Of a stretch of DNA of 64,000 bases, positions 1,664 to 59,943 are shown one piece after another. Under the pieces are notes generated by a model. The model was not told the DNA's origin, ran no database searches, and saw only the letters and a program-made list of their open reading frames with translations. This stretch comes from Podarcis bocagei (lineage: Eukaryota). A program made the translations under genes and the position numbers. The stretch lies in the NCBI GenBank assembly GCA_964188305.1, contig OZ076895.1; one strand, given 5' to 3'. Each line of letters starts with the position of its first letter. The first letter of the stretch is position 1.

Positions 1664-2559
1664 TTCCACTGAACTGTTATATTTGTCTGTCTTTAGAGAA
1701 AGCAGTGAAGGCTTCCAGCTGAGTCCATGACTTGAAGGAAGCCAAAAGAACTGTTTCCTTAAGGAGCTGGCATCTGGGTCTGTGCAGCAGTCGCAAGTGA
1801 AGAGCTATCTATGCATGCATATTTGATAAGTGAGAGCAATGTGGGAATGATAGCAACATCCTCGCAATTGACTATGCTAGGTAAGAACAAGACGTGCTAA
1901 GAATTCAGGGATGGCAATTAAATATATGCAAAGAAAGCTAAAATTTTATTTTGGATCATGAGTCATTGAAGATTTTTAAAAGCCTGTGCTTCTGTTCTTG
2001 CAAGACACAACTTGCTCTTTCTAATTGCTGCAGCACCTTCAATGGCTACTGATCCCTCCCAGAGCTCCCAGAATCAGCGAAACGTGATGGAAGTAAAGCT
2101 GCAATGATTTGAGTGCATAATTTATGTTTTTTAAAAAATAAAATAAAATCTGCATTAAAAGTTCCAATCTATGAAGTCTAACTCAATGAAATATTCAAGA
2201 GACAATAAATACATTTTCAGGTATAAGATGGCTCTGGCACTGCAATAGCTCCTTGGACGTCAAGCCAGAGAGTTCCCAGTCGTGTTGGTGACTCTCTGCC
2301 AAATGACTAACGTACTGTAAGACATGTCTTGCACCAGCTGCCGGGTAACTAGAACTGCTGAGCTCTGACAGCTTGTTTGCACATTTGTATAATATGCTGG
2401 GAAGAGGTGGCGATGCTCCTTTGGGAACCTCTTTATTAAATAATGTGCTTCTGCCCTCTGCATGCCTGGTATTCGTTGAGTAATTCAAATTTTTTGTTTC
2501 TTAAAAAGGACTGCACAGCAGACCCATTCACTACAATACACAATCCCAATGTGTTACAC

Positions 2560-2800
2560 TGGGCTGATGAGCATTTTTTCCAGACTGAAGGCCACCTTCC
2601 TTTCTGGACAGCCTTCTGGGGGCCAAATGCTAGTGACCCAGAGGCAAATGGACGTGGAGTGATGAATGTAATTTTTACCTTTGTATAGGTGGCTAATTTC
2701 AACACACATACTCACACAGTCCTCTGTCCTCCATTCAGGAAAGCAAGAGGCATCACCAGAGTTCAAGGACACATTCCAGCCAAGCAAAAATACTCAAGGA
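2560..2800. mobile_element. Non-autonomous DNA-transposon-like repeat fragment (related to 52831-53520 and ~56200-56530)
   Basis: Internal sequence (tttacctttgta...gttcaaggacacattccagccaagcaaaa) recurs inverted at ~53270-53400 and direct at ~56280-56390. Confidence 0.5.
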
Positions 2801-3415
2801 GGGCATAGGCTCTGGTTCAACTAGCTCCCTGCCATGCAGGTAGCGCTGACCCAGGGTTCCAGCACAGGTCAGCCAAGGGTGAACACCTGGGTAAGCGGAA
2901 AGCCGGGAATGGGCTAACTCCACCCCCAAATGTCTCCCTAGACTCAGGCACAGGCACAACCCCCTATCGGGGTCGACCAAACCATCGAGTCCCTAGATTC
3001 CTTTAACGGAATACCCTTCACATAGGGAAGGCGAGAGTGTTCTCCCATCCCTATCATCTTAACCAGAGCCTATCCGCAACCTTACAAGTTGTGATGATTT
3101 GCTACGCGGCAGGTGAAACCCAAATGGCAACAGCCAATCAGCCAACTGGGGAAAATTCCTGCCGTGCCCCTGTCCCAACAACAGACGACACACGATGGCA
3201 TAGCAAGGTCAAGCGCAACAAGCCCTAAAAGTAGGGAGAGGTGGGCAGGTGTTCCAAATGCACACACCAAAAGAGGAAGCTCTGGATCACAAGCATGGGG
3301 ATAAATAGGTCCCTCGAACCGTTTAGACTGTGTCCCATTGGCCAGATTGCACCTAGCTTTGAGGGACCTACCAATCGGGTGTTGTGGCTGACCAGTGTAC
3401 CCACCCACAACACAG
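2800..3415 (-). mobile_element. Structured non-coding repeat, probably DIRS/Ngaro-type terminal repeat (copy A)
   Basis: Shares core cctatcc..accttaca.agttgtga..ttgctacg..cccaaatggcaa..gccaat.agccaa..tagcaaggtc and terminal cccacccac with 51060-51740; many hairpins; family assignment is from recall only. Confidence 0.55.
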
Positions 3416-4784
3416 GGTGTCAGTTGTTCAGGTTTCACTGCAATACATGCCCTCTTTAAGGGAGGACCCGATTTGCATCAATGTAAATCCTAGCTCAGTG
3501 ACACACCAGTGCAAGGGCCATGGGATCATCTTGAAAGTTAGGTATCTATTGATGCTGCCTCATCAAACTTGTGCTGTCAAAATGTTACCTCTCAAGCATT
3601 GGGTTTCTCTTGATTTCACCAAGATGGCTTGTTAAGCACTGCTCCGTTTGTGTTTGCGTGTGGGTGTAACACTCCTCAAGAAAGCAATAAATAAATAAAT
3701 CTGTTTCCATGGATGAAAAATTTGGCCTTGAGGATGTTGAGAGTGTGCTCTCCATGTCTTTGAGGGAGAAGGTCAAAGGATAGCTAAATTACAAGAAAGT
3801 AGGTCTGATCCTCGCCTTCATATTCTCTCCCAAACGTTGAGCAGTTCATAACCACAACTATTGCAATCAGAAGTAAAAGCAGGGCCCCACTGTCTGTGGA
3901 AAGAGAAAACTTCAATCTTTACAACCATTCTAATATACCAATATGATTATACTATGATCATATGAGAGGGACTTCAGACCAGCTGTTTTGCATAGGTTGC
4001 AGAAAAAGGGACACGGTGTGAGATAGGCTCAAGGCACAAAAACAAGAATAATTCAAGGATTATAACTATAACTATAAACAATGATTATAACCTTAAACTT
4101 CCCAGAGTGAGTCATAGAAAGTGCCAGAATGTTCTTAAGCACTAACTTAGTTGTTCACTTGTCAAAATGTTACAGGAACTGGTCTGTAGTATTTGGAAGG
4201 GGCTGGAGAGCACAGTTACATTAAATACACAAAACGCTGACAGAGAAGTCGATCTTGGGATGAACGAGTTTTTCTGATCGCCAGCTCTTTGTCTCTTTTT
4301 GCACAATGCTCTTACTCGCAATGGGACTTACGCTCAAGTAAGCGTGGATAGGATTTCCATCTAAGTGACACAACCAGAGCTCTCTGCAAAGATTTCCCAT
4401 AGTTCATTACTTCCACGAGCCTTATAGCAGCAAACCATAAGGGAATGACACCTTTAAGATACAAAGAGTGTATTGCCTTTGTGCACAGCTATATGAGAGG
4501 GGGGATATATACATTTCAACACAAAACTCTGCCTTAATGTAACGCAGTAGGCTACTCAGCAAAATATGGAATGTAAAAATCATCCGTCATCCTGTGGTAA
4601 ATGCTCTAATGTACTTGAATCCAGCAGTAGCTGCAGGACTCCCATCAGCAACTTCCCATTTACATTGTTGTTGTTGCTGTTGCTGCTGCTGCTGCTGTGT
4701 TATTATGGGAGAGTTGTGAGTGTCAATTTCAGAGACAGGTGTATGCGATAAACAGAATCTCAGAGCCAGTGTTCTTGATTGAGA

Positions 4785-5163: not shown

Positions 5164-6501
5164 AGAACAAACATGCGACTTTGATGATTCTAAAGAGCAA
5201 AAAGGGAGGATATATCAGAGACAAAAAAGGAAGGACATCTTCCCTGGGAGATAGGGATATTAGATTTAATGGAGCTCTTTTTTAACACAAAAAAGTGAGG
5301 GAAATTTGTGGGGAAGCAGCAGCTGTGGGGATTGTTAATGATGAGTTATAGTAAATCTTTCTTGTGAACTCAGCCCCTGAGCCTTTTTTCTGCAACTCTG
5401 CATGGGATCAGATCTAGAATATCAAACATTTCCTGTCTGGTTGCCAGTTATGACTAAATAATAAACTACATTTCCTTCCATGCAGCCCAAGGGAATTGCT
5501 GAATGGGGTAAATTGTTGATTATGTGAGGGAAGATGGTTTTGGAGGACAGTATCCAGAATACTGAGGACAATGACATGCTTCCTGCATCTCTGATGTACT
5601 AAAAGAGAAATAAAGACTGTGTTGAAGATGGTTCTCTTCCTGACTTTGGTCATTTTAGAATCCCCCCCCCCCATGAATATAATGCTCTCTGCATTAGGTT
5701 GCTATTGGCACAATATTCCTGCCCCTTAAGATTTCAAAGGTAGAATGAGAGGAACCAAAATTATAAAGCAGCCAAAGCTCTTTCCCTGTGAGGAAAGGCT
5801 ATGATACCACTTTAAGAGACATGGCTTTGCCTAAATAATCCTTCCTGGGAGCTGCAGTTTGTTTAGGATGCTGACAGTTGTTAGGAGACCTCTAGTCCCC
5901 TCACAGAGCTGCAATTCACAGATTTCCTTGGAAAGAGAAATTGGTTGTCAAGCCACACCAGGAATCGTAGCACAATGTGAGGAACAGGGATCTCCTAACA
6001 GCTCTCAGTACCCTCAACAACCTCAGGATACTCAGCTTGGTATGGAGTTTTGATTCATGTACACATCTGGGCAAGTGATGTCACCTAATAGAACACAATT
6101 TTGTATGTTGTTAACTTTTTGCACACTTTCCCCTAAAATATGCATTTTTGTAAACATTGGTTGGGGAATTGCATCACAAAATTCAACAGAAAGCAAATTT
6201 TGAAGGATGGCTGTGTTTTGGTCCTCCTATTGCTTTGGAAGGAGTGAATTTGATAAAGTCATTTTTTAATCCAAAACTGTATCAAATTTCTCCCCCATCC
6301 CTAAATACAGGTCCTATTGGAGTCCAATAGCATCCAATAAGGGCCATAGGTTCCTTAACACAATTTATGGATTTTATTAGAAGACTGAGGGAGGGACTCT
6401 AAGTCAGAGGGAGGCGTCTTAATTTACCTTTTTGAGAGGGTAACATGCTACAGGTAACAACAAGCATACTTTTGATGTTTAAGGATTGTGTCTGATAATG
6501 A

Positions 6502-10989: not shown

Positions 10990-11781
10990 TTTTTGTTTTT
11001 TTTTATAAAATTTTTATTGGTTTTACAAAATTTTAAACAACAAACAAACACTTAAAGGAACAAACATACATGTATAGTTTCATCACCTATTTTCATAAAC
11101 CTCTTTTCTCGGACTTCCCCATACCCCCCCTTCTGCATCCCAGTGTCCATATTTTTATAGCAACTCCCAACTGTTAGTCTCCACCTCTGTCATCTAAGTC
11201 CTCTCTGTATTCTGACCTTGTGTCACCGTATCCCTTTGTTTCTGAAAGCCAGAACACTTTAACATTCATTAAGGTTATAATAGTCTTTAAGATAGCTTTT
11301 AAATTTTCTCCACTCTTCTTCCACCGTCTCTATTCGTTGATCACGGATTCTGCCTGTCATCTCAGCCAATGTCATGTAGTCCATCACTTTCATCTGCCAT
11401 TCTTCCAGAGTGGGTAGATCTTGTGTTTTCCAATACTTCGCGATAAGTATTCTTGCTGCTGTGGTAGCATACATAAAGAACGTTCTATCCCTCTTTGACA
11501 CCAATTGGCCGACAATGCCCAGGAGAAAGGCCTCTGGTTTTTTGGGAAAAGTACATTTAAGTACCTTTTTCATTTCATTATAGATCATTTCCCAGAAGGC
11601 CTTAATCCTCGGGCATGTCCACCAAAGGTGGTAGAAGGTACCTTCAGTCTCTTTACATTTCCAACATTTGTTATCGGGCAAGTGATAAATTTTTGCCAGT
11701 TTGACTGGGGTCATGTACCACCTATATACCATTTTCATAATGTTTTCCTTTAAGGCATTACATGCCGTAAATTTGATACCG
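10990..11781 (-). mobile_element. 5'-truncated L1-clade LINE with TSD
   Basis: ORF 11259-11786 has CWKC..HLWWTCP zinc-knuckle ORF2 C-terminus; A-rich tail on minus strand; 13-bp TSD aacaaaagttctg at 10977-10989 and 11782-11794. Confidence 0.95.
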
Positions 11782-14120
11782 AACAAAAGTTCTGGAATGT
11801 CTTTTGTTTAGTTTGTTGGCTTGTGAGTCAGAGGTCTCCTCTCAACAAAACATTTCTGTTGCAGGAATATTGCATTTGCCCAGCATCCAAAGCACAATAT
11901 ATCAGGCAGTAGCCAGCTAAATAGATCTGCTAGTCAAGGATTTATGCTTGTGCAGTGGAACTTCTCCCTCTCTCTCTTCCAGCACACCTTTTAAATTTGT
12001 TGCGGGTTTCCCCCCAGACCTCTGGAGCAGCTTTGGGGAGGGCATGAGGGTGCATGGCACAAAATGACACAAAAGGAAAAGGAATGGAAATGGAGGAGGG
12101 GGAAAATGGCACATAAGGGGCAGGGAGAAAAGTTGTGCCATTTCCACTGCTAATGGTGAGCCCCAAGAATTTATATTTTCCCTTGAGATATTTGATGAAA
12201 TAGTTCTTCCAATTTCTCTTGGGTAGAGATTTCTGAGAGATCATTTGCACACAGCTCTAAGAAAAGTTTCTAAATACAAATCCTAGACTCTTAAGCACTT
12301 TGCTTTTGTCATTTGATCCTGTGTAAGCCCCCTCTTGCTTTTGTGAAATCCTGAACATATATGATGAAACAATCACAAATGTTTCCAGAGAAGTTGAGCA
12401 CTACAGTAAAGAATTGTTTCAAACCAGAGCTAATTCTGTATGGATATCCAGTTTTGTTTTCATTTGACTGACAACATCATAGGGTATACGTGGCACCTGA
12501 AAGCACCCTCTGAGTTGACTTTCCCTTCATTAGATGTCTTCTAAAATCTCATTTTCTTAGACCATTGAGCTAATAAATCCAAGGTGAAGCTTTCCTGCCC
12601 TGTCTAATCCATTGCAGGTGGCTGAATCATAGGTTTCTCCAGCTTGTCAGATCAATGTACCGGTATTTGCACATAAGAAAGAGGCAGGTATCCTTGGAAA
12701 TATGCTTAGCTATTCTGGTGAGCAAGCCATGCACAGCATTCATTTTCAGAGAGTACAAGGACTACTAAAGCAAAGCACTGATTGGCCGGTTGGAGAGAGC
12801 GCTGCCTCTGATGTGACCCTTATATTGCTGTAGGCAATCACTTATCCCCCGTCTTCCAAGCCCTGAAATGTGGTACTAATCTCCCATCTCCCCTTCATCT
12901 CCCATCTTCCAAGGCCCAAAATCAAAGGGGGTCCTTTCCTCAGCCACCTTTGGAACAAAAGGAATTATACTGGCGATGCTGATGATAATGATACAAAAGT
13001 AATGTAGTAGAAATGTGATTGTACAGTTGGAAGGAAGTGATAACAAGATCTTGAATTTTATGTAACTAATAGCTTTAATGAAACTTGATGGCTGGTGTCT
13101 ATTAGCTGCACCATCTGCTCAGGTGGGGCAACAGGAATTAAGAGGCAGCCATTGCCAACAAAGCGTGCAGTAAAAAGGAACATGCTTTGGAGATAGTCTT
13201 CAAGAGTATGTTGTTTGCTTTTGTGTTTCTTTAAAGACTTGACCATCTGGATGCTTGCCCATTTTCCACACTTAACTTTTGTAAATAAAGACTGCTGGAC
13301 TCCTTCTTCATCACAAGAAAGCTGACCCCAGACTGATCGCAGTCTTGCACAGCATTCCCCAACCTGGTGCCCTCTATGAGCTTTGTACTGCAACTCCCGT
13401 CCAGAAAGCATAGCTGAGTTAACTGGGGTTTATAGGAGCTGTAGTAGAAAGCATCTGGAAGACAGCAGGTTCAGGAAGACTGGCTTTTTATTATTTACTT
13501 ACGTGCACACACACCTGGAATCCACCAGTGATCCACCAATGTGATTTTAAGGTTACAAACAAGAGTGGCTTTAGCACACATAGCTCTGACCACCAACACT
13601 TCACCTCTGCTCCCCATCCCTGCCAGCATGTGCCTCTTGAGGCAACTTCTTCACTTGCCTAACGATAGGGCTGGCCCCAAGTAACACAAAATGCCATTGT
13701 CACCACTAGGGAATCTGGCGGCTGAAGCCCACAAGCCTCTTCCGTCTGCCTCAGCCATTCTTTACTCAGCAGTATAGTCAGACACCAGCAGGAAAGGAGG
13801 AGAGCAGGCTGACAACAGTGGCTGAGGAGCTGTGTGGCCTCTGACCCGCCTGCTTGTCTGATCTCCTAGTGGCAGGAAGCCAAGAGCTTTTGGGGGATTT
13901 GGACAGCCATTCTGTCTGTCATTATCCGGGTTGATTCAAAGAGCTAAGGGCATTCTGAACAAAGCAACAGAGACAGCAGCTCTGCATTTCATTTAGGAGA
14001 GGACATACGGAGGCCAGTTTTGGACTGTCGGATATCACATTCACTGAACAGGAAGGCAAAATTTGGCCTAGGACCAGAGCTGCTTAATTGGAGGAGGAGC
14101 AAAAGATGGCTCTCTGTAAG

Positions 14121-14400: not shown

Positions 14401-14890
14401 CACTCTTTCTCCCATTTTCCTGCACCTACCTTTCCTCTTTGTTTCCCCTCTTTCCCTTCCATCATCTCTCCACGTCTGAGACTCTGGATGTTGTCATCCA
14501 AGAGCTCCTCGTAGTTCTTAACAGGGATTATATGAGACTTGTACAGGAGATTAGAAAGACTGTCTTGTGTTTATCCTTCTAATTTATTGAGCCCTCTCTT
14601 GCCTTTTATGAGAAGGAGTTATTTCCTTATGGTTACATTTCTAATTTTCAATTTTATTCACTGGGTCTGTTGAGGTCTGATTTCCTAATAGATGAGGTGA
14701 TTGTGAATGGATTGGCAGAACAAGGAAAGGGAAATATCTTTATTTTTGGTGTTGGACCAGGACCAAAACTGCCTTCTGAAAGGAGGGGAGAGGAGAGAAT
14801 CTCCTACAGTTTATTGAGCAAAGGACTCTTCCATGCTCATCTGTTTAAGCATCACAAAGCTCCTTTTTGCCCAACCCCAAGTTTCCTCTA

Positions 14891-15130
14891 CAGTGGTACC
14901 TCGGGTTAATAACTTAATTCATTCTGGAGGTCCGTTCTTAAGCTGAAACTGTTCTTAACCTGAGGCACCACTTTAGCTAATGGGGCCTCCTGCTGCCACT
15001 GCGCCGCTGGTGCACAATTTCTGTTCTCATCTTGAAGCAAAGTTCTTAACTCAAGGTACTATTTCTGGGTTAGCAGAGTCTATAACCTGAAGCATCTGTA
15101 GCCTGAAGCGTCTAACCCGAGGTACCACTG
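14891..15130. mobile_element. Tc1/mariner-pogo (Tigger-like) MITE, ~240 bp
   Basis: TIRs cagtggtacctcgggtta / taacccgaggtaccactg, TA TSD; four copies in window. Confidence 0.92.
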
Positions 15131-15399
15131 TACCTTTTATTATTCCTCTCAATACCAGCTGTTGGAGAACATCAGCAGGAAAGTGCTATTGTAGTCATGT
15201 CATGCTTGTGGGCTTCCCAACAAACATCTGTCTGGCCTAGATGAATCATTGGTCTCATCCAGAAGGGTTCTCCTTGTGTTCTTATGGAAGCAGAAGCCTC
15301 CATACTGAAGGAGAAGTGGGAAGTGCAGGAGTCTGATGCTCACTTAGGCTCACTCAGGCTATAGCTCAGAGTGGGGAGCTGACTTCAGTCACCAGGCCC

Positions 15400-19078: not shown

Positions 19079-20182
19079 CCAGGGTAAAGCAGTGACTCAT
19101 CTTTACCCAAAAGTGCTATGCAAGTTTACTCAGAGGTCAGTCCCATTAAAGTTCAGTGGGGCTTAGTTTTTAGGAGTATGAATAGAACTGCAGCCTTAGA
19201 CTAGGCTGAATGTGCCCCCCAGATCTCGCTCCCTGCCCCTGACAGCTCTCTTCAGTAATTCTGCCTGGCATCCTCATTGAACTGTGATGATGCCTCTTGC
19301 TTGTGTGTATGTGTGGAAACCAATGAATTCTGTGTGTTTGGAATGCAGCCTACTGCCTACACTACAAAGCTAAGAATCACATCTGTTTCTTCCCAGACCT
19401 CTGCCTGTGGCACCACCCACTTCTGGCAGTCAGTCCCTGGAAAGTTGCAGCTGAGGGAAAGTGGGTCCCAGGGCTGAAGCAGATTCCCCAACCCCCTGCT
19501 CTACATTTGTACTATAGGGGAAACCTCTGGAACTTACTTCTGAATAAACATGGATACCATTGCTCAGTTATTGTAAGAATAGCGATGTTATGAATTAGAC
19601 ATGCCCCTGTTTTTGCCCGTTGAAAAATTGTTGGAAGGTTTCCAGGATGTTTTGTGAACCTTGGGTGCACCATTGTTAACAGCTCATGTGGGCTTTTATC
19701 CTCCTGCAATAACTAGGCTGCTGCTGTTGTTGTTTCTTTATTTGAAGATAGTTTTAATATTTTCCTTTCCTTTCATTCACACACCAGATGTGCAGACAGT
19801 CAACATGTGCCTCTTCAATACTCTGATGAATTTGTTTACAAAATCAGAAAAACAGAGTGAGGTGACTTTGAAAAGGCATCTCTGCAAGAGATTGCAAAAT
19901 ATGAAGGCATGTGAATAACCAGGGTAGGCAGACAATAAGGGTGGGTGGGCAGAAAACATTGGGCAGAGGAAATTAGCCTTATTAGTTAAGGTGGTTCAAT
20001 AACCAAGCTGTGTTAAGCGGCAAAAACAACAGCACTGTGGAACTTTAAAAGCAAAGACATTTATTTTGGCATCAGCTTTTGTAGTGTCATTCTTCACCAA
20101 CCTGATGCCCTCTAGATGTTTTGGGCAATTCCTGTTGTAGTCCAACTGGCTGGAGAAGATGGGAGTTGTAGTCTACAGTGTA

Positions 20183-20424
20183 CAGTGGTACCTCGGGTTA
20201 AGTACTTAATTTGTTCCGGAGGTCCATTCTTAACCTGAAACTGTTCTTAACCTGAAGCACCACTTTAGCTAATGGGGCCTCCTGCTGCTGCCACGCTGCC
20301 AGAGCACGATTTCTATTCTCATCCTGAAGCAAAGTTCTTAACCTGAAGCACTATTTCTGGGTTAGCGGAGTCTGTAACCTGAAGCGTATGTAACCTGAAG
20401 CGTATGTAACCCGAGGTACCACTG
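20183..20424. mobile_element. Tc1/mariner-pogo MITE (same family as 14891-15130)
   Basis: TIRs cagtggtacctcgggtta, TA TSD. Confidence 0.92.
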
Positions 20425-20462
20425 TATAGAGGTTGGCAAAGACTGGGTCCTAAAAGTGTATA

Positions 20463-21055
20463 CAGTGGTACCTCTGGTCACAAACGTACCGTCTTTTTTG
20501 CACCATAACACTCACTTTTTTCCTCCTAGAAAGTAAGGGGAAATGTCTGTGCATGTTATGGAGCGAATGCCTGCTGGTGGCAGGGGGGATCTGCTGCAGT
20601 CGTGAGCAGAGGATCCATGGTTCCCCTTCCTTCCCTCCTCCGTGGTTACAAAGCATGGATCCACATGGATCCTCAGGATTTTTGCATTGGGCTACTCCAA
20701 ACTCACTGTCAGATCACATGTCTGTGGCCACAGCATGAACCACAAAAATCATATATCCACTATTTCGTTTAGAATATTTTTTTTCTTGTTTTCCTCCTCT
20801 AAAAACTATGTGCGTGTTATGGTCCGGTGCGTGTTATAGAGTGAAAAATACGGTAATTCATTCCGGAGGTCCATTCTTAACCTGAAACCGTTCTTAACCT
20901 GAGGTACCACTTTAGCTAATGGGGTCTCCCACTGCCGCTGCACCACCAGCGTATGATTTCTGTTCTCATCCTGAGGTAAAGTTCTTAACCCGAGGTACTG
21001 CTTCCAGGTTGGCGGAGTCTGTAACCCGAAGTGTTTGTAACCCGAGGTACCACTG
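20463..21055. mobile_element. Tc1/mariner-pogo MITE interrupted by a second MITE
   Basis: Left TIR cagtggtacctc at 20463, right TIR ends at 21055; removing 20489-20853 restores the family sequence. Confidence 0.88.
20489..20853. mobile_element. Tc2/pogo-like MITE nested in another MITE
   Basis: TIRs ccgtcttttttgcaccataacac / gtgttatagagtgaaaaatacgg; TA duplicated at 20487-88 and 20854-55. Confidence 0.85.
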
Positions 21056-21944
21056 TATATCATCAAGAGACTAAGGCATCTTCAGCATTTGCCATGAGCT
21101 GTATAGGGAGGAAGTCAGATATTCAGGGTCGCACTGTCCCACATACGAATACATTGCAAATGGGATGTACTTTTGCCTTATGAAAGAAGCAGGGTGGTTT
21201 CCCCCTGTTAAATTACGACAATCCAAACATATAAGCCATATATCACCATAATATATAAGCCATCCTATCTTTAAATCAAAACGTAATATAAATTTTACTG
21301 CTATGGACAGCAGCAACAATACAACTCAGAATTATATCAGTGATGAAAGTAATACATATGGTGGAATGTTATCTTGATATTTCACATTCCAGTGATTTAT
21401 GAATAAACTCCACTTTTTAATGAATTTGCCTGGTGAACATCCTTTCTGACATCTCTGATGATATGTCTCGTTTGGCTTACAGAACTACTGTCCAAATGTG
21501 CTTATACTAGTAAAGAAGCAAGGCTTTAAGCAAGACCGTAAAGAGATCAAGATTCACAGACGTTCTGGTTGTTCCCATCTTAAATGAAAAAAGAAAATGC
21601 CATATATCTGAACCGGGGTGGGGGTGGGCCACTGCCCTCTGTTGGTGGGCTAGCCTTACCTGGCAGATAGCACCAGTGGTCTAAGCAGCACTAGATGGTA
21701 GCTGAGGGCTGCCATTTTAATTTCCACAAAACTGGGAAGGCACAGGGGAAGTGTCAGCAGTAGATCCTAATTTGCTCTACAATGTTCAACAAATAAATTA
21801 AAAAATGCATCAACCCTACAAGAAACAGGTTCAAACGACTGGAAGAACATTGGAGCAATTCTGTCTTCACATGAGATGAATACTGACCATTTAGAATACC
21901 ATCAGACCGGGGGGGGGGGGCGGACTTGAATTGCACTTATCTCA

Positions 21945-24150
21945 ATGAAAAACAATTGATGATATTAACCAGCAGAAAATTAGGCAAAAAGAACAATACT
22001 GGCAATAAATCTTAGAACACTTGATTGCTTTGGTCAGAGTTCTTGGCAGGCTAAACTTGGCATTATGTGGTACAACTGAAACATTGTACACTGCTAGGAA
22101 TATATTTTTTTTGAAGTGTGTATAATATCTGGCCCTTTTTGATCCTATCATGAATGAATTTTAGCACAAAGTTAAAGATCAATAAACAAGAATTAAATAC
22201 CTAGAAAAATATATCCAAAATGAGCTTATAAAGCAGAAACTTTTAACACATGCAAACTCAGCCAAATACTAGTTAATTATTCTGCACTGCATGTCTGATA
22301 TAAGTCATACTGAACAAACAACCATTTTACTGTGTTATGTTGTTGTAATCAAGCCATCAGATAATGAGATGTTCTGAGCCTGAGGTCAGAGAGCACATTT
22401 CTTGGGAGCTTGAGCAACTGGGATTACCAGTTGAGAATCTGCATGGTCAAGGTTTTGATAATGGGAGTAACAGTAAAGGAAAAGGAAATGGCATACAAAA
22501 GAGGGTTCTGGACATAAACTCATGTGTCTTTTTTGCACCCAGTAATGCATATACTTTAAACTTGGTAGCCAATGGTGCTGCTAAATGTTGTCTGGAAGCA
22601 ACTAGTTTCTTCGGTTTCATTCAACAGATCTATATCTTTATGTTATTTTTTTGCACCAACTCAGCATTGGCAAATTCTAACTAGCCATGTACCAGATTTA
22701 GGGAAAGCTGTTAAGTCATTGAGCAAAACAAGGTGAGAGAGTTGGATCAATGCTGTGAAACCACTGAGATATCATCTTGGCAGTATATATGATGCTTTAA
22801 TAGAGATCTTTGATGGCACAAGCTTAAAAGGTTTACCTGGAAATACTTCCTGAATTGAAGCTCAGGCCCTTGCTGACGCAATTTTAAAGTTCAGGTCTGT
22901 GGTATCCTTTGTTACATGGTACAACTTCCTTTTTGAAGTCAATCTTACAAGCAAGCTACTACAAAATAAGGAAGCTGATTTAAATTCAGCTACAAGCCAA
23001 TTGCAAGTGACCCAGAATTACCTTGTGGGCTGCAGGTGTGATGAGGGTTTTCAACAAGTTTTGATAGATGCTACTGAGATTGCAAAGGAGCTAGAAATAC
23101 TACCGAACTTTGAGACAGAACAAGTTAGGAAAAGGAGAAGCAAGCAGCAGGCACTGAAAGATCCAAAGCAGAAATTCAAAGTAGGTTTCTACAATGCTGT
23201 TTTAGACACGGCCATACAGACTGTTGAAGAGAGATTTCAACAGCTACAACAATATAATTCCCTATTTGGCAGCAAGAATTTTGAAAAATCATTGATGCAC
23301 AATGGAAACAAAGATATTGATGCTGGAGATCTGTGCTGTGAACTTATAGCAATACAGTGGTACCTTGGTTCTTAAAGTTAATCTGTGCCTAAACTCTGTT
23401 CCAAAACCAAAGCGTTCCAGAACCAAGGCATGCTTTCCCATAGAAAGTAATGAAAAATGGATTAATCCATTCCAGACTTTTTAAAAAACAACAACCCTAA
23501 AATGGCAATTTAACATGAATTTTACTATCTAATGAGACCACAGAACCATAAAATGAATGCAATAAACAATGCACTGCAGTCGCACAATCAATCAATCAGC
23601 AGCTGTACTGGGTTCCACGCAGTCACAAAAACAAAACAAAAAAGCTGCAAAAACAAAAATGCAAAATAAATAGCAAAAACAGACAGACTTCAGCCTAACA
23701 CTCAAATCGGAAGCGTAACACTCAAAACGGAGCATGTTCAGCTTCCGAAAAAGTTTCGCAAACCGGAACACTTCCTTCCGGCTTTGCAGTGTTTGGGTTC
23801 CAAGTTGTTTGAGTACCAAGGCGTTTGAGAACCAAGGTTCCACTGTAGTTCGAAGACTTCCAAACTCTATGCCACCATAATGAGTACTTCTCTTCATACT
23901 ATAACCAAAATCTCCTGGATAACGTGCCTAATGTTTCTCTTGCTCTAAAGATCCTTCTCATACTTCCGGTGCCAGTAACAAGTGGTGAAAGCAGTTTCTC
24001 AAAGCTCAAGCTTATAAAAACGTACAATCACCCAACAATGGTGCAAAAGAGACTAGTTGGCTCAGCAACTATATCAATTGAACATCAGCGCTTGATCTGA
24101 AGGAATTGGTGACAAAATTTGCAAAGGAAAAGGCATACAGTGAGATTTTG
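21945..24150 (+). pseudogene. Decayed hAT transposase (ZMYM1-like/DUF4371 plus hAT C-terminal dimerisation domain)
   Basis: Motifs YLEKYIQNEL, GQGFDNGSNSKG, AYTLNL, SKTR*ES, LPVPVTSGESSFSKLKLIKTY; several stops and frameshifts; split by MITE 23355-23845. Confidence 0.92.
23355..23845. mobile_element. Tigger/pogo-like non-autonomous element, ~490 bp
   Basis: TIRs cagtggtaccttggttct / agaaccaaggttccactg; TA TSD at 23353-54 and 23846-47. Confidence 0.9.
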
Positions 24151-29428: not shown

Positions 29429-30812
29429 GTCTGAACCCCCTCCACAACAGTGGCTTGGGGCATTTTTATTTTAATGAAGTTCATTTACTCTCCAAATTCT
29501 GTTTCTTTTATTTTACCTTTCTTCTTCCTCTTGCATTACCAATAGCTGTTCACGTATGCTGCAGTACCAATTCCCGAATCCTTAGCATATCCTAATCCGT
29601 ACTTTGGGATAAGAAAAATAAAATAAAATCTAATTTCCATGCATAAAGGCATTTTTGCAGTGCTGCCAATAAATCCCCCACCTCCGTCTGCACTACATCT
29701 ATTGTGGATGCTGTTAATGCTCTAAAGAGAAGGAAAGACAATCATTTTCAAAGTGGATGCACATTCTGATCAATGTGACTCTTCATTTGGTTCACAAACA
29801 TGGAATTTAAATAGAGTTGCTAACATTGCTTCATTTAATAAATCCATATCTACCTTTTTGTGAGAGCTTTACAACAAATGAACACTATCCAAAGAGTTAA
29901 AAACTAAGATATAGCAACTGAAACAGCAGGAGGCTCAAGCCAGTAAAAAATCTCATTATGGAGTAGAGTGGAATAAACATGTTTTTGATGCCCACTTAAA
30001 AGAAACCAATCAAAGGGCTTTCACCCCTCCAAGCTGAGGGGATTTCATAGCTAAGAGGCCACCACCAAAAAGGCCTTTTACCTGGGATCCACCAGCCTGA
30101 TAGCTCTTAATGGTGTGCTAGAGAGCAGAGCACCAAAGGCAAAATTCAAGGCCAAGGCAGTTTCATATGAGTGAAAGCAGCCCACCAAATACCGTAACAG
30201 CATTCGTGAATTATCCTGATCCTATATATGCTTGCCTGGATGTAGTACTAGTGAGTACTAGGGATAAAAGAGAAATTATTTCAAATACAGGAGGGAATTT
30301 ATTATTGTTGTTATTTAACAAACACAGAAAAAACCTTTTGTAAACAACAGCACATCATGCCATATTTTATACCTTTAGATTTGACAGAGATGGTTAAAAA
30401 TAATTACTTGCTTCTTTAATATAGTTATATCTCACCTTTCTCCCAAAGTGGGATTCAAGGCAGCTTACAATGTTTAAAAACAAAATTATACAGTACAAGG
30501 TAATAAAATCAACCTAGCTTAAAAGCAATAATTAAAATACCATACCCTCCAACACCTGGACAGCAAAATCCAGAACATCATCTTCCAGGGTGCCATCTTC
30601 CTGTTTTTTCCTCATGACAGCACAGCGGCCATTTGGGGAGCTGTGATGTCATGCAATTTTGTTTCACAATTCTGCCCTGTCCCCCAAAAAAGTGCTTTTT
30701 CAGGCAAGGTACAACCTTGGCATTCAGCAGGGATAACAGCACAAAATCATGCAAGATCACAGCACCCCAAATTGCCGCCATTCTTTCTGGGACATTTCTG
30801 CAGTATGAAATA

Positions 30813-31054
30813 CAGTGGTACCTCGGGTTACATACGCTTCAGGTTACATACGTTTCAGGTTACAGACTCCACTAACCCAGAAATATTGCTTCAGGTTAAG
30901 AACTTTACTTCAGGATGAGAACAGAAATTGTGCTCTGGCGGCGCAGCAGCAGCAGGAGGCCCCATTAGCTAAAGTGGTGCTTCAGGTTAAGAACAGTTTC
31001 AGGTTAAGAACAGACCTCCGGAACGAATTAAGTACTTAACCCGAGGTACCACTG
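30813..31054. mobile_element. Tc1/mariner-pogo MITE (opposite orientation to the other copies)
   Basis: TIRs cagtggtacctcgggtta / taacccgaggtaccactg, TA TSD. Confidence 0.92.
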
Positions 31055-34000
31055 TACATCAAAACACATTTTAAACCAGCAATTAAATACCAGCAGTCCA
31101 GTGATCAGCATCACCTGCACCTCAATTTTCAAAGGCCTGTCTGGACAAGAAGGCATTAGCCTGCCAGAGGAAGGATATCAAACAGGGAGCCAGTCTTCTT
31201 GGAAGGGAATGTCATAATATGGGCGTATCCCTTGCTGATGTTGATGGGACCGAGAGAAGGTTAGCACCCAGGCACGTTTGCATATTAAAATATGAACTTT
31301 CAGGTAGCCTGGGCCCAAATCACATGCCCTTTATAATGTCCTTATAAAGCTTTTTGTTCACCATCCCAATGTCAATCAGAGCAAACAAGGCAGTTCCAGT
31401 GCCATTACCAGGCCTGAAGTCACATGCATTTCAAAAACAGGGGAGTGGAACCTGTGACCATCCTTACGTTGTTGGACTACAGCTCCCATCAACCCTAGTC
31501 TACATACCCAATGGTCAAGGATGAGGTAGTCCAGAATACCTGGAGGGCCCCTGATTCCCACCCTGGATGTACCGGAAGAGAGGTGCCAGCTTATGAGAAC
31601 GATTGGAGGTGGAGACCAGTGTCTCACACGCAACATCCCAACATCCTAATGTCCAGATGTTGTACATGTGACGTCAGGACATTGGAAGGAGCCAGGAGCA
31701 GAGCCAAACACGGCTCCCCTCTGTGGCAGAAGGAGGAGGAGAAGGAGCCTCTGCACTTTTCAAACATGGGGGGGGCATTCATGGGGAGGCAACCCCAAAA
31801 ACATAGGGCCCCAAAAGGGCTCAGCCCCCTGCAGTTTGTGTACCCGTAGTGGAATCTCAGAAGATCCATTGCAAATGTGCCTTCTCTCAGGAAAGGATGC
31901 CTTAATTTTCAGTTCTGCTAGTATAAGGGCTACCTGGTGTTTTTTTTAACTTACTCCTGTTCTCTTACAAAAGAATTGTGAATCCATTCCAGTTAGCGTT
32001 AGAGACAAGTCTGACTAATTATACTGATGAACTGTATTTCTAAAAAGCGGTTCTCCAATTGCCTCTCTGTCCCAGCACGCCTTTGATCTTTTGCACGGGT
32101 CACGGTTGTCTAACCTAATTAGACTGCAAGGGCTTCCCCCATCTTTAAGACTGAAACAGTTTGCAAGCAAGGCTTAACACGGTGCCCTCTCTCTCTCAGA
32201 CATCCTCCTACCACACCATTTAATTTCCTTTTAACATTCAGCCTGAAAAGGAGTTTTTTGCAGCTCAGAAATCATGCCATTCCATGAACATTGCTTTGTC
32301 TTTATTCTTTACTAAGATGCTACATTCATATTATACCACTGGCACAGTGGAACAAATGGGTGGATGAACAAATCCCATCACAGTGAATTGGATAAATGTT
32401 AGATATGGGCAACTGATCTTGAGATCATGATAGTTCACTGGTGCCTCCCTTGACTGTGTGCTGGGGCGCTGATTTTGGCTTTCTTGTCCACCTCTTCACC
32501 TTCTGTGGATCTGAACAGGAAGCAAAGGAGCTCAGCAAAATTGGAGAGGGTCAGAAATAAAAAAAGATTCAGAAGTGTCATCCTATATAACGAAGCCTTC
32601 CTTAAAGATCAAGTCTCTGCAGGTAACCATAGAAATAAGTGGCAGTCAAGACTCAGGTCCACCAACACTTGCAATCAAAGGAAAGTGATAGCCTGAGATA
32701 AGTCTTTTTGATCCACACTTGCAGCTCTGATAGAAGCCGGAAAAATCCAGGCTCTGTTACAGGATGTCTCTTCCGTTACATTTCATCTTGTTTCAGAAAA
32801 CAGCAGAAAAAGAAATGACAAAAGCAGATGGGGTTTGGATCAATGTTTCAACTTTCCAAATGCTCTTAGATTGGTGTGTTGCACACATATAAGGCTTCCA
32901 GTCTTCTTGCTAATTTTAGCCATTTCTGCTTGCCTGGAATAATCACTACACATCATTCCCCTTGCAATTTTGTTTTACATCTTCTCTCAACACCTATTTA
33001 TTTTGGCAGACTTATCCAAGATAACATGCCTTTGTAGATTTCAAATGCTAGATTTTATTTTAAAATGTTGCCCAGTCTGGGGTGCAATTGCTTTGAAAAT
33101 AGCAGTAGCAGTAATAATAATAATTATAATAATAATAATGCACATCAGGTCCTGTGATCTCTTTCTTTGAGATAAGTTATTTAGGCTTTTGAAGGCTTTG
33201 CTGCTGCTGCTTCTTTTGTGGCCTTCATTATTGCTGACTATGCTTCTGTTTGTTTATATGTTAGGATTTTGTGATTTTACTGCCATATTATCCATGATTA
33301 TGTTATGTCTTTTGTATAATGCTTTGGGGGCCTCGGGGGGAAAAAAATCAATAAATCAGTCATAAACACTTCAAATGAATGACTGAACAAACACCACCAC
33401 CATGCCTGGAAACAAAATTCAAGATGTTATACATTTTTTTTTAAAAAAAAAGAATAGTTCTTCTTTTATTTAGCTGGGAACATGCTTGTTGCATGTCCTG
33501 GCCCCTTCCATTGGGTGCTTAACAAAATGGTATTCCTGGTTGAGTCTTACACCCATCTTTGTGTGTGCTCTCTGCAGGCTTCCTGCCCAGGAGCTATATG
33601 GGTGCTGTGTTGTATGGGCTCCCTGTCATGTTCTCTGACCTCAATCCCCACTCTGGTTCAACAAGAGACTGAGAAGGATTGCCTGGGCAGCCATTGTCAC
33701 TTGCTCCGGAACTATATTATGTTCAGAGGATGTGGTTTTGCCCAGCTCATCAGACTCAGAGGGCACTTCCCCAAGGCAATCCTTGCTTCTCCTTTGCTGT
33801 AGGAGTCAGCAACCCTTTGAGAAATGGACAGCTCCTTACAGGGCTTCACAAAAACAAACAAACAAAATATACGAAGAATTGAATTCACCAAAAGTTAAGC
33901 TTTTTCAGCTATTTAATCCCTTCCATTTAATCAATGGGATTGAAAAGCAGCTTGATTGAGCCCCAATTATTCAAAACACCTTTACCTGTTACTCAAAAGA

Positions 34001-50157: not shown

Positions 50158-51059
50158 ACGAAGAATTGTGTTGTCCATCAGGTGCACAAGGGCAAAAGGG
50201 CCATCCTCCCAGCTACTTCAAAGGGAGGAATGGAGCCTGTGCACCCTGTAGCAGTTGTTTGGACCACACCGATGAGGTCTACCTCTCCTCTGAGAACCAT
50301 GGCTCTAGCAATTTATTTTTGGTGAACTGAATATTTGATGATCTGGCATCCTAGGGCAGTTGCCATAGTTCTAGAACTGTGACAGGGCCCACCAGTGCAG
50401 ATGCTTTCTCTGGGCACACCATTGCCCACGGCCTGGGTCCCAGCTTACCAAATGGCAGCTGTGGACAACTGGGAAGCTACCATTCAAAAGTGCCTATAAT
50501 GCCCCAGAGTGCAGCTATGCTGCTGGGGCATTAGGGGGAAATCCTATGACAGGTGACTTGCAGCCAGTCACTGCAAATTTAGGTAAAATCATGGCTGCCC
50601 TTGCTTGTAAGCCTGCTTTAGGAGAAGGGAGTTGTGATGTTGAAGGGGGTCCACTGGAGACAGGTATCTACTGCACAGAACCCCATGGTTGCTGGAAGTT
50701 GCTGCTGGCTGGAAGACAAAATAAGCCAGATGAAGATTGAAAGAAAACAAAAACAAAAAAACCCCATGAACATTAGACATTCATTCTTTCTCTGTTTTCC
50801 CCAGCAGGGAATAATTGCTGGTCAGGCCCAGGCAGGAGGTATACAGTAATAATGAGCGTAGCTGTCAGCATAAGTGACAGATATTTGCTGCTGTTCCTTC
50901 TGTTCTGTTAACACAGGAGGGACATTTTTGAATGAGAAACATTGCCATTACAATCATTATGTCCACGTGTTGCTTTCACTGCAAGCCACGGACCAAAAGA
51001 GAAGAAAGCAGACTGAGTGTAGGTATCAGAATTACAGGCTCTTTTTTCTATTGTGCATC

Positions 51060-51740
51060 AAGGCCCCATGACCACCCTGTTCCCTAAAGTGTAAATAACT
51101 AGACACCACACAGGATATTAGTTTGGGATCAAATAAGGCCACAACTTTATTGGTTAGAGAAGTGAAGTTTGGCCATAGGCATTGTGGTAAGCAACTGCAT
51201 ATATCACTCCTGCCCACCCGCTGGGAGTGTTTCTAAGGGTGAAGCTGGTGGGGGGGTGCCCTATGACCTATGTAAAATTGGGGTGTCTCCCAAGTGGTCC
51301 CCATTGTGAGGAGTGGTATGGCCCTAGCCCCCATCTAGGCATTGGAAAGGAACCACTCCTCCCAGATACCCTTACCCGTGGAGGGGCAGGCAGAGACTAC
51401 AACCTCCCCTCCAACCAAGACTAGGCTTACCCAATGCCTATCCACCTTACACAGTTGTGACGATTGCTACGAGGTAGGCAAAAGCCCAAATGGCAATGCC
51501 AATTAGCCAAGTGGAAAAAAATTCATGCCCTGCCCCCTGAAAATTAGGCGACCAACATTGTCTATAGCAAGGTCGTACCATCCATGAAAATCCTAATCTG
51601 AGGGAGGGTGAGTGGAACGCCTGCTACCTCTCGCCGCCATTGGCCCATTTAATGGCAGGAACATGATACAGTCAGTGATAGGCTAGTTTACTAGGAAGGC
51701 CCGGGGCCTGCTTGCAAAGCCACCCACCCACAAAGGGGGC
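51060..51740 (-). mobile_element. Structured non-coding repeat, probably DIRS/Ngaro-type terminal repeat (copy B)
   Basis: Core shared with 2800-3415; minus-strand AATAAAGTTGTGGCC at 51137-51151; family assignment from recall. Confidence 0.55.
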
Positions 51741-52830
51741 AAACAGACATACTAAATTTGGCTGGCTGGCATCTCAGGACTTTCAGGAACTGCTCTGCCT
51801 CCATGGTTGGAGCCAAGGAATGTTTCTGAATGCCAGTTGCTGGAAACCGCAGCAATTGGCCACTGTGAGAACAGAATGCAGGGCTATATCAATATTTTTA
51901 TAAATAAAATAAATTAGTAAGAGAACCCTGTTCCCCTTGCAGAGCTGCGGTTCCCAGAGCTCCCTGGGAAGAGGGATTGACTGTTAAGCCACTCTGAGAA
52001 TAGTAACTCTGTGAGGGAAATGCACCCTGATAGCTGAAGATGACACTTCATGGCCAAGATGAAGTAGACTGCAGTCAATTATAAGTCTGCTGCAATACTT
52101 TTTGATGTGTTCATTCACAGAGCATTCCTTGAGATGGGCATAAACATGGAAGCCCCTGCTTGTGTAGAGCTTGCAATGTTTACCAGAGTTCCCACCTAGC
52201 ACCATGGAAATACTGGACTGAAGCAAATATAATTTTCTCAGAATACTTCAGTACTCCTTATTTTCTTTGCTCTGACTGTGAATATATATTCAGTCTGTGT
52301 TGTATGCAGTCCTTTATCCCTTCACTCAGGTGGTAAACAGTACAATATAACATGGCAATGGCTGATTCCGAAGGGGGATCACAGTCCTTTTTAGAGACAC
52401 CTTCTGGCATTTGAGAAGCACACAGGCTACTCAGAAGAGAAGTGTAGGTTTCCTGGGATACTAATGGAGCCAGATCTGTCCAAAATTGCCTTTGGGCAGA
52501 TGAAAATCCAGTTGCAAAGGTTGTAGAGGTTCAGAAAATGTCCCAATTTCTTTGGCTGATAGGGAAAGAGATGTCCCTGAAGATCTGGATCTTTAATCTC
52601 CAAGGAGCAAGAGTACAGTAAACTGGCTGGCGGGCTGACAGAATACATGTAAGGGTTTGTATCTCCTCCTGCTCAAACCAAAGGTTATAAATGCTTCCCT
52701 GTCAGAAGCTTTCCCCATGTAACACTCATGCACACCTAAATAGGGAAAGTGCAGCCTGTATCTCTGCTGGCAATGCTGCAGAATGTATAGATGGAAGTAT
52801 GAATTTATAGGCCAGGATTTCATTTTAAAT

Positions 52831-53520
52831 CAGGGTTCAAGAACCTCAGGCCTGTGGGCCAAATGTGCCCCAGCAACTATTCAGCTGGCCCTCTTAAGTG
52901 CCCCCAGGCAACCCCCCTCACTGGCCCTGCTTCATATCCCATGCAGTGGCATAGAGTGGGTTGCCAGTGTCTAGGGCCACACGGAGTGGGGTGGGAGGGA
53001 AACAGAGTACGCATACACATTCAACCACCTAAAGGCATCCGCCAAACCAGGAGATCGCAGACACAGAAATAAGTAAAGAAGAGTTGTTCCATTGTCTGCA
53101 GAGATCAATCCCTGGTTTACATGGAGAAGCCATTTTCAGTGGAGCCCAGTGAAAGAAGAATGCAGCTGTATTGAGGCAGCACTGGGTTTTGAAATTTTGC
53201 ACCTCTAACAATTTTGATCCTGCGGCAACTGCCCCAGTTCCACTCCATGCTATGTTGCTAACCCCACAGGCTTTTGCCTGGCTGGAATTTGTCCTTGAAT
53301 GTGCCTATAAATGCCTGCTGCATCTATGGATGGAGATAGAAAAGGGTATGTGAGTCTGTGTGTGTAGAAACGAGCCTACTGTACTAAGGTAAGTTTTTCA
53401 TCCATTGCTCTCCCCACTTTTGCCTCTGGTGCTGCCTACCCCTGGCATCTTGCCCTAGGCAGATTGGCCAGAAGGGAATGTGGCCCCTGGGATGAAATAA
53501 AAACCCCTTCATTATCCCCA
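52831..53520. mobile_element. hAT-like non-autonomous element
   Basis: Starts cagggttcaagaacctcaggcctgtgggccaaatgtgcccc, ends near tgtggcccctggg; internal similarity to 2560-2800. Confidence 0.5.
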
Positions 53521-58780: not shown

Positions 58781-58970
58781 CTCATTAATTGATGGAGGAT
58801 GGATGAAAAAGCATAAAAGTCTTTGGCACAGCACTAACAGGACCATGGAGAGCTCCAAGGGACCTGCAGGCTGAAGCATTATCTTTTTACAGCAGCTACA
58901 GGGAAATGTTATAATCAACAGCGGCCTAGAGGCAAAATAAGCCTTTCATAGAATAGTGAAAGCTTTCATA

Positions 58971-59943
58971 GAAGCTACAGTTAGACCTGGATATGGAACA
59001 ACTGATTGGTTCAAAATTGGGAAAGGAGTACGACAAAGCTGTATATTGGCTCCCTTCTTATTTAACTTATATGCAGAATTCATCATGCGAAAGGCTGGAC
59101 TGGATGAATCCCAAACCGGAATTAAGATTGCCGGAAGAAATATCAACAACCTCAGATATGCAGATGACACAACCTTGATGGCAGAAAGTGAGGAGCAATT
59201 AAAGAACCTTTTAATGAGGGTGAAAGAGGAAAGCGCAAAATTTGGTCTGAAGCTCAACATCAAAAAAACCGAAGATCATGGCCACTGGTCTCATCACCCC
59301 CTGGCAAATAGAAGGGGAAGAAATGGAGGCGGTGAGAGATTTTACTTTCTTGGGCTCCACAATCACTGCAGATGGTGGCAGCAGTCATGAAATTAAAATA
59401 TGCCTGCTTCTTGGGAGAAAAGCAATGACAAACCTAGACAGCATCTTAAAAAGCAGAGACATCACCTTGCCAACAAAGGCCCGTATAGTTAAAGCTATGG
59501 TTTTCCCCGCAGTGATGTATGGAAGTGAGAGCTGGACCATAAAGAAGGCTGATCGCCGAAGAATTGATGCTTTTGAATTATGGTGCTGGAGGAGACTCTT
59601 GAGAGTCCCATGGACTCCAAGAAGATCGAACCTATCCATTCTTAAGGAAATCAGCCCTGAGTGCTCACTGGAAGGACAGATCCTGAAGCTGAGGCTCCAA
59701 TACTTTGGCCACCTCATAAGAAGAGAAGACTCCCTGGAAAAGACCCTGATGTTGGGAAAGATTGAGGGCACAAGGAGAAGGGGACGACAGAGGACTAGAT
59801 GGTGGGACAGTGTTCTCAAAGCTACAAACATGAGTTTGACCAAACTGCGAGAGGCAGTGGAAGACAGGAGTGCCAGGCGTGCTGTGGTCTATGGGGTCAC
59901 GAAGAGTCGGACATGACTAAACGACTAAACAACAACAACAACA
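58971..59943 (+). mobile_element. Bov-B (RTE) LINE, 5'-truncated, RT C-terminal half
   Basis: WFKIGKGVRQ, NNLRYADDTTLMAESEE, IDAFELWCWRRLLRVPWT, GVTKSRT; (CAA)n tail; one frameshift near 59262-59270. Confidence 0.97.

Follow-up and report, generated by a model that had tools for sequence, protein, structure and literature searches.

Two distantly related repeats in the window, the whole 64,000-nt stretch of Podarcis bocagei DNA analyzed here, are dead, diverged members of different subfamilies of one repeat family, which is LTR-like and very abundant in lacertid lizards. On balance, we propose that both (copies A and B) are dead copies of a unit transcribed from what is here the minus strand, and that the RNA of the active members of the family probably carries a cis-acting fold maintained by selection. 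At the two window loci the sequence itself does nothing, and these dead repeats have little weight for the annotation of the window.

Copies and layout of the repeat unit

The first-pass annotation had taken the stretches 2805-3206 (copy A) and 51175-51570 (copy B) for a diverged repeat pair of about 400 nt. The two are indeed true homologues from an interspersed retroelement-type family, but the unit measures about 0.8-0.9 kb. Their relationship is distant: nhmmer aligned 2951-3240 with 51318-51608 at an E value of 6e-15, and a blastn self-comparison of the window missed the homology. The 3' part of the noted stretch (about 3061-3215) is approximately 75% identical in copies A and B, and the part closed by the long-range helix P1 is hardly alignable by sequence between them. 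When two low-coverage DNA runs were compared with 2400-3800, the summed contig depth was 9,000-116,000 over about 2729-3480, versus about 10 in the flanks of copy A, which are single-copy. Copy A thus comes from a family that numbers thousands of copies in each genome, and the range of high depth indicates that the repeat unit is wider than the noted stretch. The family of copy A was present under at least two species labels in these two runs.

A third, better preserved copy was found at 5266-6172 of L001, a 34.7-kb stretch of Podarcis raffonei fetched via a BovB protein match. It was the one copy yielded by the four lacertid loci sampled through BovB proteins (97 kb in total), and it is the only complete copy among the three. 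An HMM of the three copies detected no additional copy in the window or the sampled loci. Reads from a single-cell RNA run on the copy A region were equal in both directions, for the most part less than 95% alike and derived from other members of the family; they are no evidence that one strand or these loci in particular are expressed.

All three copies were read with the sense strand being the minus strand of the window and the plus strand of L001. They share one sense order: an edge motif, about 200 nt of subfamily-specific sequence with CCAAT and TATA-like words, domain 2, a linker, and domain 1. In copy B and L001, domain 1 is followed by about 25 nt, AATAAAGTTGTGGCC, about 85 nt, and a second edge motif. 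The window holds the following parts of the unit, together with a repeat that adjoins copy A.

2805-3479, minus strand: copy A of the LTR-like unit (contig depth; only about 2805 upward aligns with the unit in the three-copy alignments)
3473-3479, minus strand: 5' edge motif GATGCAA of copy A, coinciding with the depth boundary near 3480
3299-3343, minus strand: promoter-like part of copy A, with GGCCAATGG at 3335-3343 and CCTATTTATCC at 3299-3309 in the sense direction (motif positions)
2495-2803, no strand assigned: unrelated abundant repeat abutting and truncating copy A (contig break points 2790-2803; not part of the unit)
51051-51850, minus strand: copy B of the unit, 5' edge approximate (nhmmer against L001 aligns 51609-51041; the three-copy HMM, 51849-51101)
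51051-51059, minus strand: 3' edge motif GATGCACAA of copy B (motif match)
51137-51151, minus strand: candidate poly(A) signal AATAAAGTTGTGGCC, a block that begins about 25 nt past P1 on the 3' side and is common to copy B and L001 (three-copy alignment)

Copy A is truncated by the unrelated repeat immediately past the P1 3' arm and hence is without the AATAAAGTTGTGGCC block; positions 2741-2803 belong to that repeat and not to copy A. The truncating repeat is about 300 bp long and interspersed, with other window copies at 19249-19550, 53270-53506, and 56202-56381. The L001 counterparts of the promoter-like words of copy A are GCCAATTAG and CCTATTTGTTAAATA, and the CCAAT/TATA-like part upstream of the fold is a putative promoter, judged from these motifs.

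The edge motif GAYG(N0-2)CAA (7-9 nt) was found at both edges of L001 (GATGAACAA at 5266-5274 and GACGCGCAA at 6164-6172), at the 3' edge of copy B, and at the 5' edge of copy A. Repeated at both unit edges, it resembles the common core of a site used in site-specific recombination. L001, the one complete copy, showed no target-site duplication and no matching flanking 4-6-mers. No terminal inverted repeats were found in copies A, B, and L001; the units contained no split direct repeats, their sole internal direct repeat being a 50-nt tandem duplication in L001; and no reverse transcriptase (RT), tyrosine recombinase (YR), or SGNH ORF lay in or beside any of the three. Spurious ORFs across the unit gave no matches in exact lookup, single-protein searches, and three-copy-profile searches. 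A palindromic repeat of about 110 nt that matches itself on both strands (MITE-like) occurs just upstream of copy B at 51913-52025 and again at 5877-5999.

The minus strand of the window is the likelier sense strand, since on it P1 is followed by AATAAA in copy B and L001 and preceded by CCAAT/TATA-like words. A G-U wobble in the closing pairing of the second domain had previously been cited in favor of the minus strand. This argument failed: it concerns a single invariant pair, and the 21 G-U versus 10 A-C candidates match the expectation from composition. The wobble pairs leave the strand unsettled.

Helix P1, the interior hairpins, and domain 2

Helix P1 closes domain 1, which is 269 nt long in copy A, 267 nt in copy B, and 360 nt in L001. 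Its arms in the window were assigned from folds and pair counts.

3061-3073, minus strand: P1 5' arm of copy A, sense AUAGGCUCUGGUU
2805-2817, minus strand: P1 3' arm of copy A, sense AACCAGAGCCUAU
51425-51441, minus strand: P1 5' arm of copy B, sense AUAGGCAUUGGGUAAGC
51175-51192, minus strand: P1 3' arm of copy B, sense GCUUACCACAAUGCCUAU, with one bulged A

Both helices lie where they had been described, with 13 perfect pairs in copy A (2805-2817 with 3061-3073) and 17 pairs and one bulge in copy B (51175-51192 with 51425-51441). The compensatory change claimed for them was borne out as well: the 10 pairs common to the three copies include three double changes, and none is broken. Pair 1 is A-U in copies A and B and U-A in L001; pair 7 is U-A in copy A and A-U in the other two; pair 8 is C-G in copy A and U-A in the other two. 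Past these 10 common pairs, P1 is extended differently in each copy. For another subfamily, RNA reads give the consensus UUAGGCAUUGGUU at the P1 5' arm, a sequence to which the L001 3' arm is complementary.

The interior of domain 1 is made up of hairpins, as follows.

2818-3060, minus strand: domain 1 interior of copy A, with H1 3022-3054, H2 2996-3013, H3 2940-2992, H4 2875-2938, H5 2845-2873, and H6 2824-2844 (minimum-energy folds)
51193-51424, minus strand: domain 1 interior of copy B, with H1 51379-51413, H3 51308-51361, and H6 51205-51229 (folds)

H1, H3, and H6 occupy homologous slots that are bounded by shared anchor words and hold stems of different sequence; H2, H4, and H5 are without clear counterparts in copy B. 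The stems of the three shared hairpins are listed here.

H1: AUAGGGA/UCCCUAU in copy A; UGGAGGGG/CCCCUCCA in copy B; UGGAGGGG/CCCCUCCA in L001
H3: GGACUC/GAGUCU in copy A; GAGGAGUGGU/ACCACUCCUC in copy B; CCCAGGGGCU/AGCCCCUGGG in L001
H6: GCUACCUGC/GCAGGGAGC in copy A; CACUCC/GGAGUG in copy B; CUGUCCCCG/CGGGGGCAG in L001

In the H3 slot, copies B and L001 carry perfect 10-bp stems of unrelated sequence. The former is the gaggagtggt/accactcctc pairing of the first-pass annotation, which forms 10 perfect pairs at 51308-51317 and 51352-51361, and the tgtctccc anchor was likewise found at 2931 and 51284. An aagggt/accctt helix had also been described as kept by both copies. The words are present at 2875-2880/3013-3018 and 51235-51240/51368-51373, but the minimum-energy fold of copy A leaves this pairing unused, ACCCUU pairing there with a nearer AGGG and not with AAGGGU; in L001, read by eye, the pairing carries one mismatch. 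At 5708-5830 of L001, H1 is duplicated in tandem with a 50-nt period (86% alike), followed by a (CTG)n run. The domain 1 interior tolerates the loss, gain, and duplication of hairpins, and hairpin number differs between copies.

On the 5' side of P1 lie the linker and domain 2.

3074-3098, minus strand: linker between domain 2 and P1 in copy A, sense AAUCAUCACAACUUGUAAGGUUGCGG, the best-conserved block of the unit
3099-3206, minus strand: domain 2 of copy A, with the clamp UUGCUAU (3200-3206) paired with GUAGCAA (3099-3105) around a side hairpin and a U-rich hairpin at 3107-3164 (folds)
51442-51570, minus strand: linker (51442-51463) and domain 2 (51464-51570) of copy B, hairpin degraded (broken pairs; z 0.0)

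The linker sequence AAUCGUCACAACUUGUAAGGUUGCGG is nearly invariant in the three copies, and the depth peak of the unit, 116,000 at 3058-3104, covers it. It had no match in metagenome contigs or viral contigs, and its three matches in bacterial genome contigs were taken for chance. A second domain closed by ttgctac/atagcaa had been part of the proposed conserved fold. The two words are in place (3099-3105/3200-3206 and 51464-51470/51564-51570), but they are invariant in the three copies and show no covariation. This clamp helix competes with an equally invariant pairing, GACCUUGC/GUAAGGUU; both helices of domain 2 being invariant, they say nothing about conservation of structure. The z score of the domain 2 fold was -2.8 in copy A, -2.2 in L001, and 0.0 in copy B. 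The U-rich hairpin has a single double change in its lower stem (C-G to U-A, between copy A and L001), and copy B is broken at two pairs. The loop strands of this hairpin are AAUUUUC/UUUCA in copy A (U4/U3) and U4/U4 in L001.

The two best-conserved blocks contain words that are complementary over 8-9 nt, CACAACUU in the linker and AAGUUGUG immediately past AAUAAA. These blocks lie at 3078-3092 and 51137-51151 in the window and at 5663-5680 and 6075-6089 in L001. As a long-range helix, the linker-tail duplex was no better than with shuffled tails (P about 0.4).

A short sense ORF of 36-44 aa is open over the U-rich hairpin and the linker in all three copies, with a common UAA end.

3085-3201, minus strand: short sense ORF of copy A
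51450-51581, minus strand: short sense ORF of copy B
5548-5679 of L001, plus strand: short sense ORF of L001

With about 3 synonymous versus 9 non-synonymous differences between copy A and L001, this ORF is probably not coding.

Fold statistics and competing explanations

The evidence for the fold comes from three related copies (A, B, and L001), and the covariation statistics are accordingly weak and ignore phylogeny. Compared with dinucleotide shuffles, domain 1 gave sense z scores of -5.8 (A), -2.4 (B), and -2.8 (L001) and antisense z scores of -4.4, -3.5, and -2.9, in the same order. The whole stretch of copy B is barely above shuffles (z -1.9 on the plus strand and -1.1 on the minus strand), and most of its hairpin slots are near shuffle level. 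An RNAalifold consensus of 74 pairs, computed from a plain MAFFT alignment, had an energy that no column shuffle attained in sets of 200 and 150 (z -6.7 and -5.6). The same test gave z -3.0 for the upstream control region and no significance for the tail; the control value indicates that part of the fold signal is generic. On the antisense strand the consensus z was -4.6, and the sense and antisense consensus energies were -58 versus -41 kcal/mol. The consensus structure contained 26 compensatory pairs versus 18.6 +/- 3.8 in shuffles, about 2 sd above them.

We also projected the minimum-energy pairs of one copy on another for the six copy pairings, with permuted partners as the null. Double-changed pairs that still pair numbered 11-16 versus 6-8 expected, with P values of 0.002-0.05 in five of the six pairings and 0.2 in the sixth; approximately half of the pairs changed between copies are broken. 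Copy A differs from the family majority at seven paired sites; at six of them the majority letter pairs too, and at four of these six it converts G-U to Watson-Crick. The claim of an approximately 270-nt fold conserved through compensation thus stood for P1, H1, H3, and H6, but not for the domain as a whole, about half of the changed pairs being broken and copy B poorly structured.

The broken half of the changed pairs could be read to mean that no fold was ever selected, a G+C-rich, hairpin-prone repeat and a loose alignment mimicking compensation and only a short inherited P1 inverted repeat being real. We consider this quite unlikely. The near-shuffle level of copy B in most slots, the compensatory count only some 2 sd above shuffles, and the z score of -3.0 of the upstream control agree with it. 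It conflicts with the three double and zero single changes in the 10 common pairs of P1, for which chance was roughly estimated at about 1 in 10,000, with the perfect, unrelated 10-bp stems in the H3 slot of copy B and L001, and with the consensus energy that no column shuffle reached. A different possibility, to which we give limited credence, is that the fold acts at the DNA level: single-stranded minus-strand cDNA (the window plus strand) would fold, or the P1 arms would be copied from one another during replication or strand transfer. The arms would then co-vary without selection on RNA shape, just as the internal complementary region of DIRS elements mirrors the termini. Folding is nearly as good on the antisense strand (z -4.4, -3.5, and -2.9; alifold z -4.6), the wobble pairs give no strand signal, and DIRS-1 offers a precedent in its single-stranded linear cDNA and complementary internal sequences (PMC7192593). 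Against a DNA-level origin, the P1 arms lie well inside the unit of about 900 nt, at about 410 and 680 nt, and not at its termini, and no part of the unit is complementary to the unit ends. Templated copying cannot account for the compensated stems H1, H3, and H6, and the sense energies are the lower ones.

The third alternative concerns the kind of element and not the fold: the unit may be a solo LTR (U3-R-U5) whose R is long and structured, left by an endogenous retrovirus or by an LTR retrotransposon of the integrase type, a possibility that we find rather improbable. CCAAT and TATA-like words, about 500 nt of transcribed sequence, AATAAA, and a further 85 nt or so do resemble U3-R-U5; a reading of the unit from TG to CA is possible; and isolated copies number in the thousands. 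Set against this resemblance, the sole complete copy, L001, has no 4-6 bp target-site duplication, and the same 7-9 nt GAYG(N)CAA at both edges fits site-specific recombination better than an integrase. A selected, RNA-level fold in the active members is the reading that we carry forward.

Element class and a possible 3' platform

As to its class, the likeliest reading of the unit is that of a terminal repeat (A+B) from a tyrosine-recombinase (Ngaro-type) retrotransposon, because L001, the one complete copy, is without a target-site duplication and a common short motif marks both edges. Ngaro-like elements of the DIRS order encode RT/RNase H and a tyrosine recombinase and, in amphibians, also an SGNH hydrolase; their split direct repeats are laid out A1...B1-A2-B2, and they integrate without target-site duplication. 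The present unit is likewise a vertebrate retroelement repeat, with no target-site duplication around its one complete copy; it is LTR-like, with a promoter-like part and a candidate poly(A) signal. It differs in that its copies are isolated, without RT, YR, or SGNH ORFs and without split direct repeats; the window loci and L001 hold single units, which could be solo A-B products. The literature on Ngaro and DIRS elements describes repeats and ORFs, and we found in it no conserved RNA fold for Ngaro repeats.

Other classes are marked by other features. Integrase-type solo LTRs have TG...CA termini and a target-site duplication of 4-6 bp. Whereas tRNA-derived SINEs have a tRNA-like head and an A-rich or simple-repeat tail, ARAGORN found no tRNA-like sequence in the window, and the units end in GAYG(N)CAA with no tail. 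DIRS-like elements carry inverted terminal repeats and, internally, a region that complements both termini, whereas the inverted repeats found here (P1, H3, and H4) are internal, none involving the ends of the unit. The first-pass annotation had also considered a ribozyme or an IRES-like element. Neither has support: no Rfam hit reached the gathering score in the window, and the three units gave chance-level hits only (E >= 0.2).

DIRS-1 amplifies via single-stranded linear cDNA and needs complementary internal sequences; the primer of its reverse transcription is unknown, and a 3' self-priming hairpin has been proposed (PMC7192593). Complementary sequence blocks, to which a role in cDNA synthesis is ascribed in DIRS-1 (PMC7192593), also lie within the present unit, which probably comes from a tyrosine-recombinase retroelement. 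The blocks of the present unit differ from those of DIRS-1 in that the arms close an internal 270-nt domain, and do not mirror the element termini, and in that further hairpins co-vary.

Cis-acting folds are already known from the ends of retroelements, and the present one would add to them. Structured R regions occur in retroviral LTRs, as in the Rex-responsive element of HTLV-1 and BLV and the TAR and poly(A) hairpins of HIV. The present unit, LTR-like itself, likewise has a long fold, closed by a stem, that separates its putative promoter from its poly(A) site and might draw remote 3'-end signals together; unlike those of the viruses, this fold has no sequence or Rfam similarity, precedes AAUAAA instead of following it, and has no retroviral genes nearby. 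The ENE elements of KSHV PAN, MALAT1, and plant and fungal transposons clamp poly(A) in a triple helix, in which a U-rich internal loop (about U5 per strand) between stems acts on a 3' A-rich tract. By analogy, the hairpin at 3107-3164 is an ENE-like candidate, with U runs flanking an internal loop, G-C-rich stems, and a position upstream of the poly(A) signal; yet its U runs are short (U4/U3 and U4/U4), it lies about 330 nt from AAUAAA in sequence, and in copy B it is degraded. In R2 and in stringent-type LINE/SINE tails, the reverse transcriptases of these non-LTR elements recognize 3' UTR structures. Similarly, a conserved 3' RNA structure in thousands of ORF-less copies could here exploit an autonomous partner, but the element class is another one, the fold is much larger and multi-branched, and the copy ends have no poly(A) or simple-repeat tail.

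If the fold is selected at the RNA level, the transcribed part of active members would carry a cis-acting folded region between the CCAAT/TATA-like part and AAUAAA. This region would consist of the clamp helix with the U-rich hairpin, the single-stranded linker, and the multi-hairpin domain of 267-360 nt that P1 closes. In master copies, selection would keep P1, H1, H3, and H6 paired while their letters change. P1 may compact the 3' region, such that the linker and the U-rich clamp adjoin the poly(A) signal and tail, and the resulting platform might stabilize the element RNA and be recognized or primed by its reverse transcriptase. A more specific proposal, which we offer as a long shot, is that the P1-clamped 3' platform is the cis signal for recognition and RT priming of lizard tyrosine-recombinase retrotransposons and their ORF-less riders, with CACAACUU/AAGUUGUG as the fold-back priming site. 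If true, the platform would be the first handle on how such elements prime reverse transcription. A conserved fold in a family of thousands of copies could also explain the abundance of ORF-less units in lacertid genomes, and the many subfamilies would form an unusually rich natural covariation data set. Such a fold would give a concrete cis element for work on a question raised for the DIRS order (PMC7192593), how its retrotransposons select their own RNA and start reverse transcription.

The window contains several other repeats. Remnants of a BovB/RTE-type reverse transcriptase lie at 58956-59916; their best protein matches, at 89-90% identity, are from Podarcis. Judged by eye from their translations, the ORF at 11259-11786 (minus strand) looks like a LINE-1 ORF2 C-terminus and the ORF at 22899-23375 (plus strand) like a hAT-transposase fragment. 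A probable SINE, young and about 250 bp long, occurs at 20179-20427 and 30810-31058 and also at 14889-15132 and 20854-21063; two of its copies are 95% identical and in opposite orientation.
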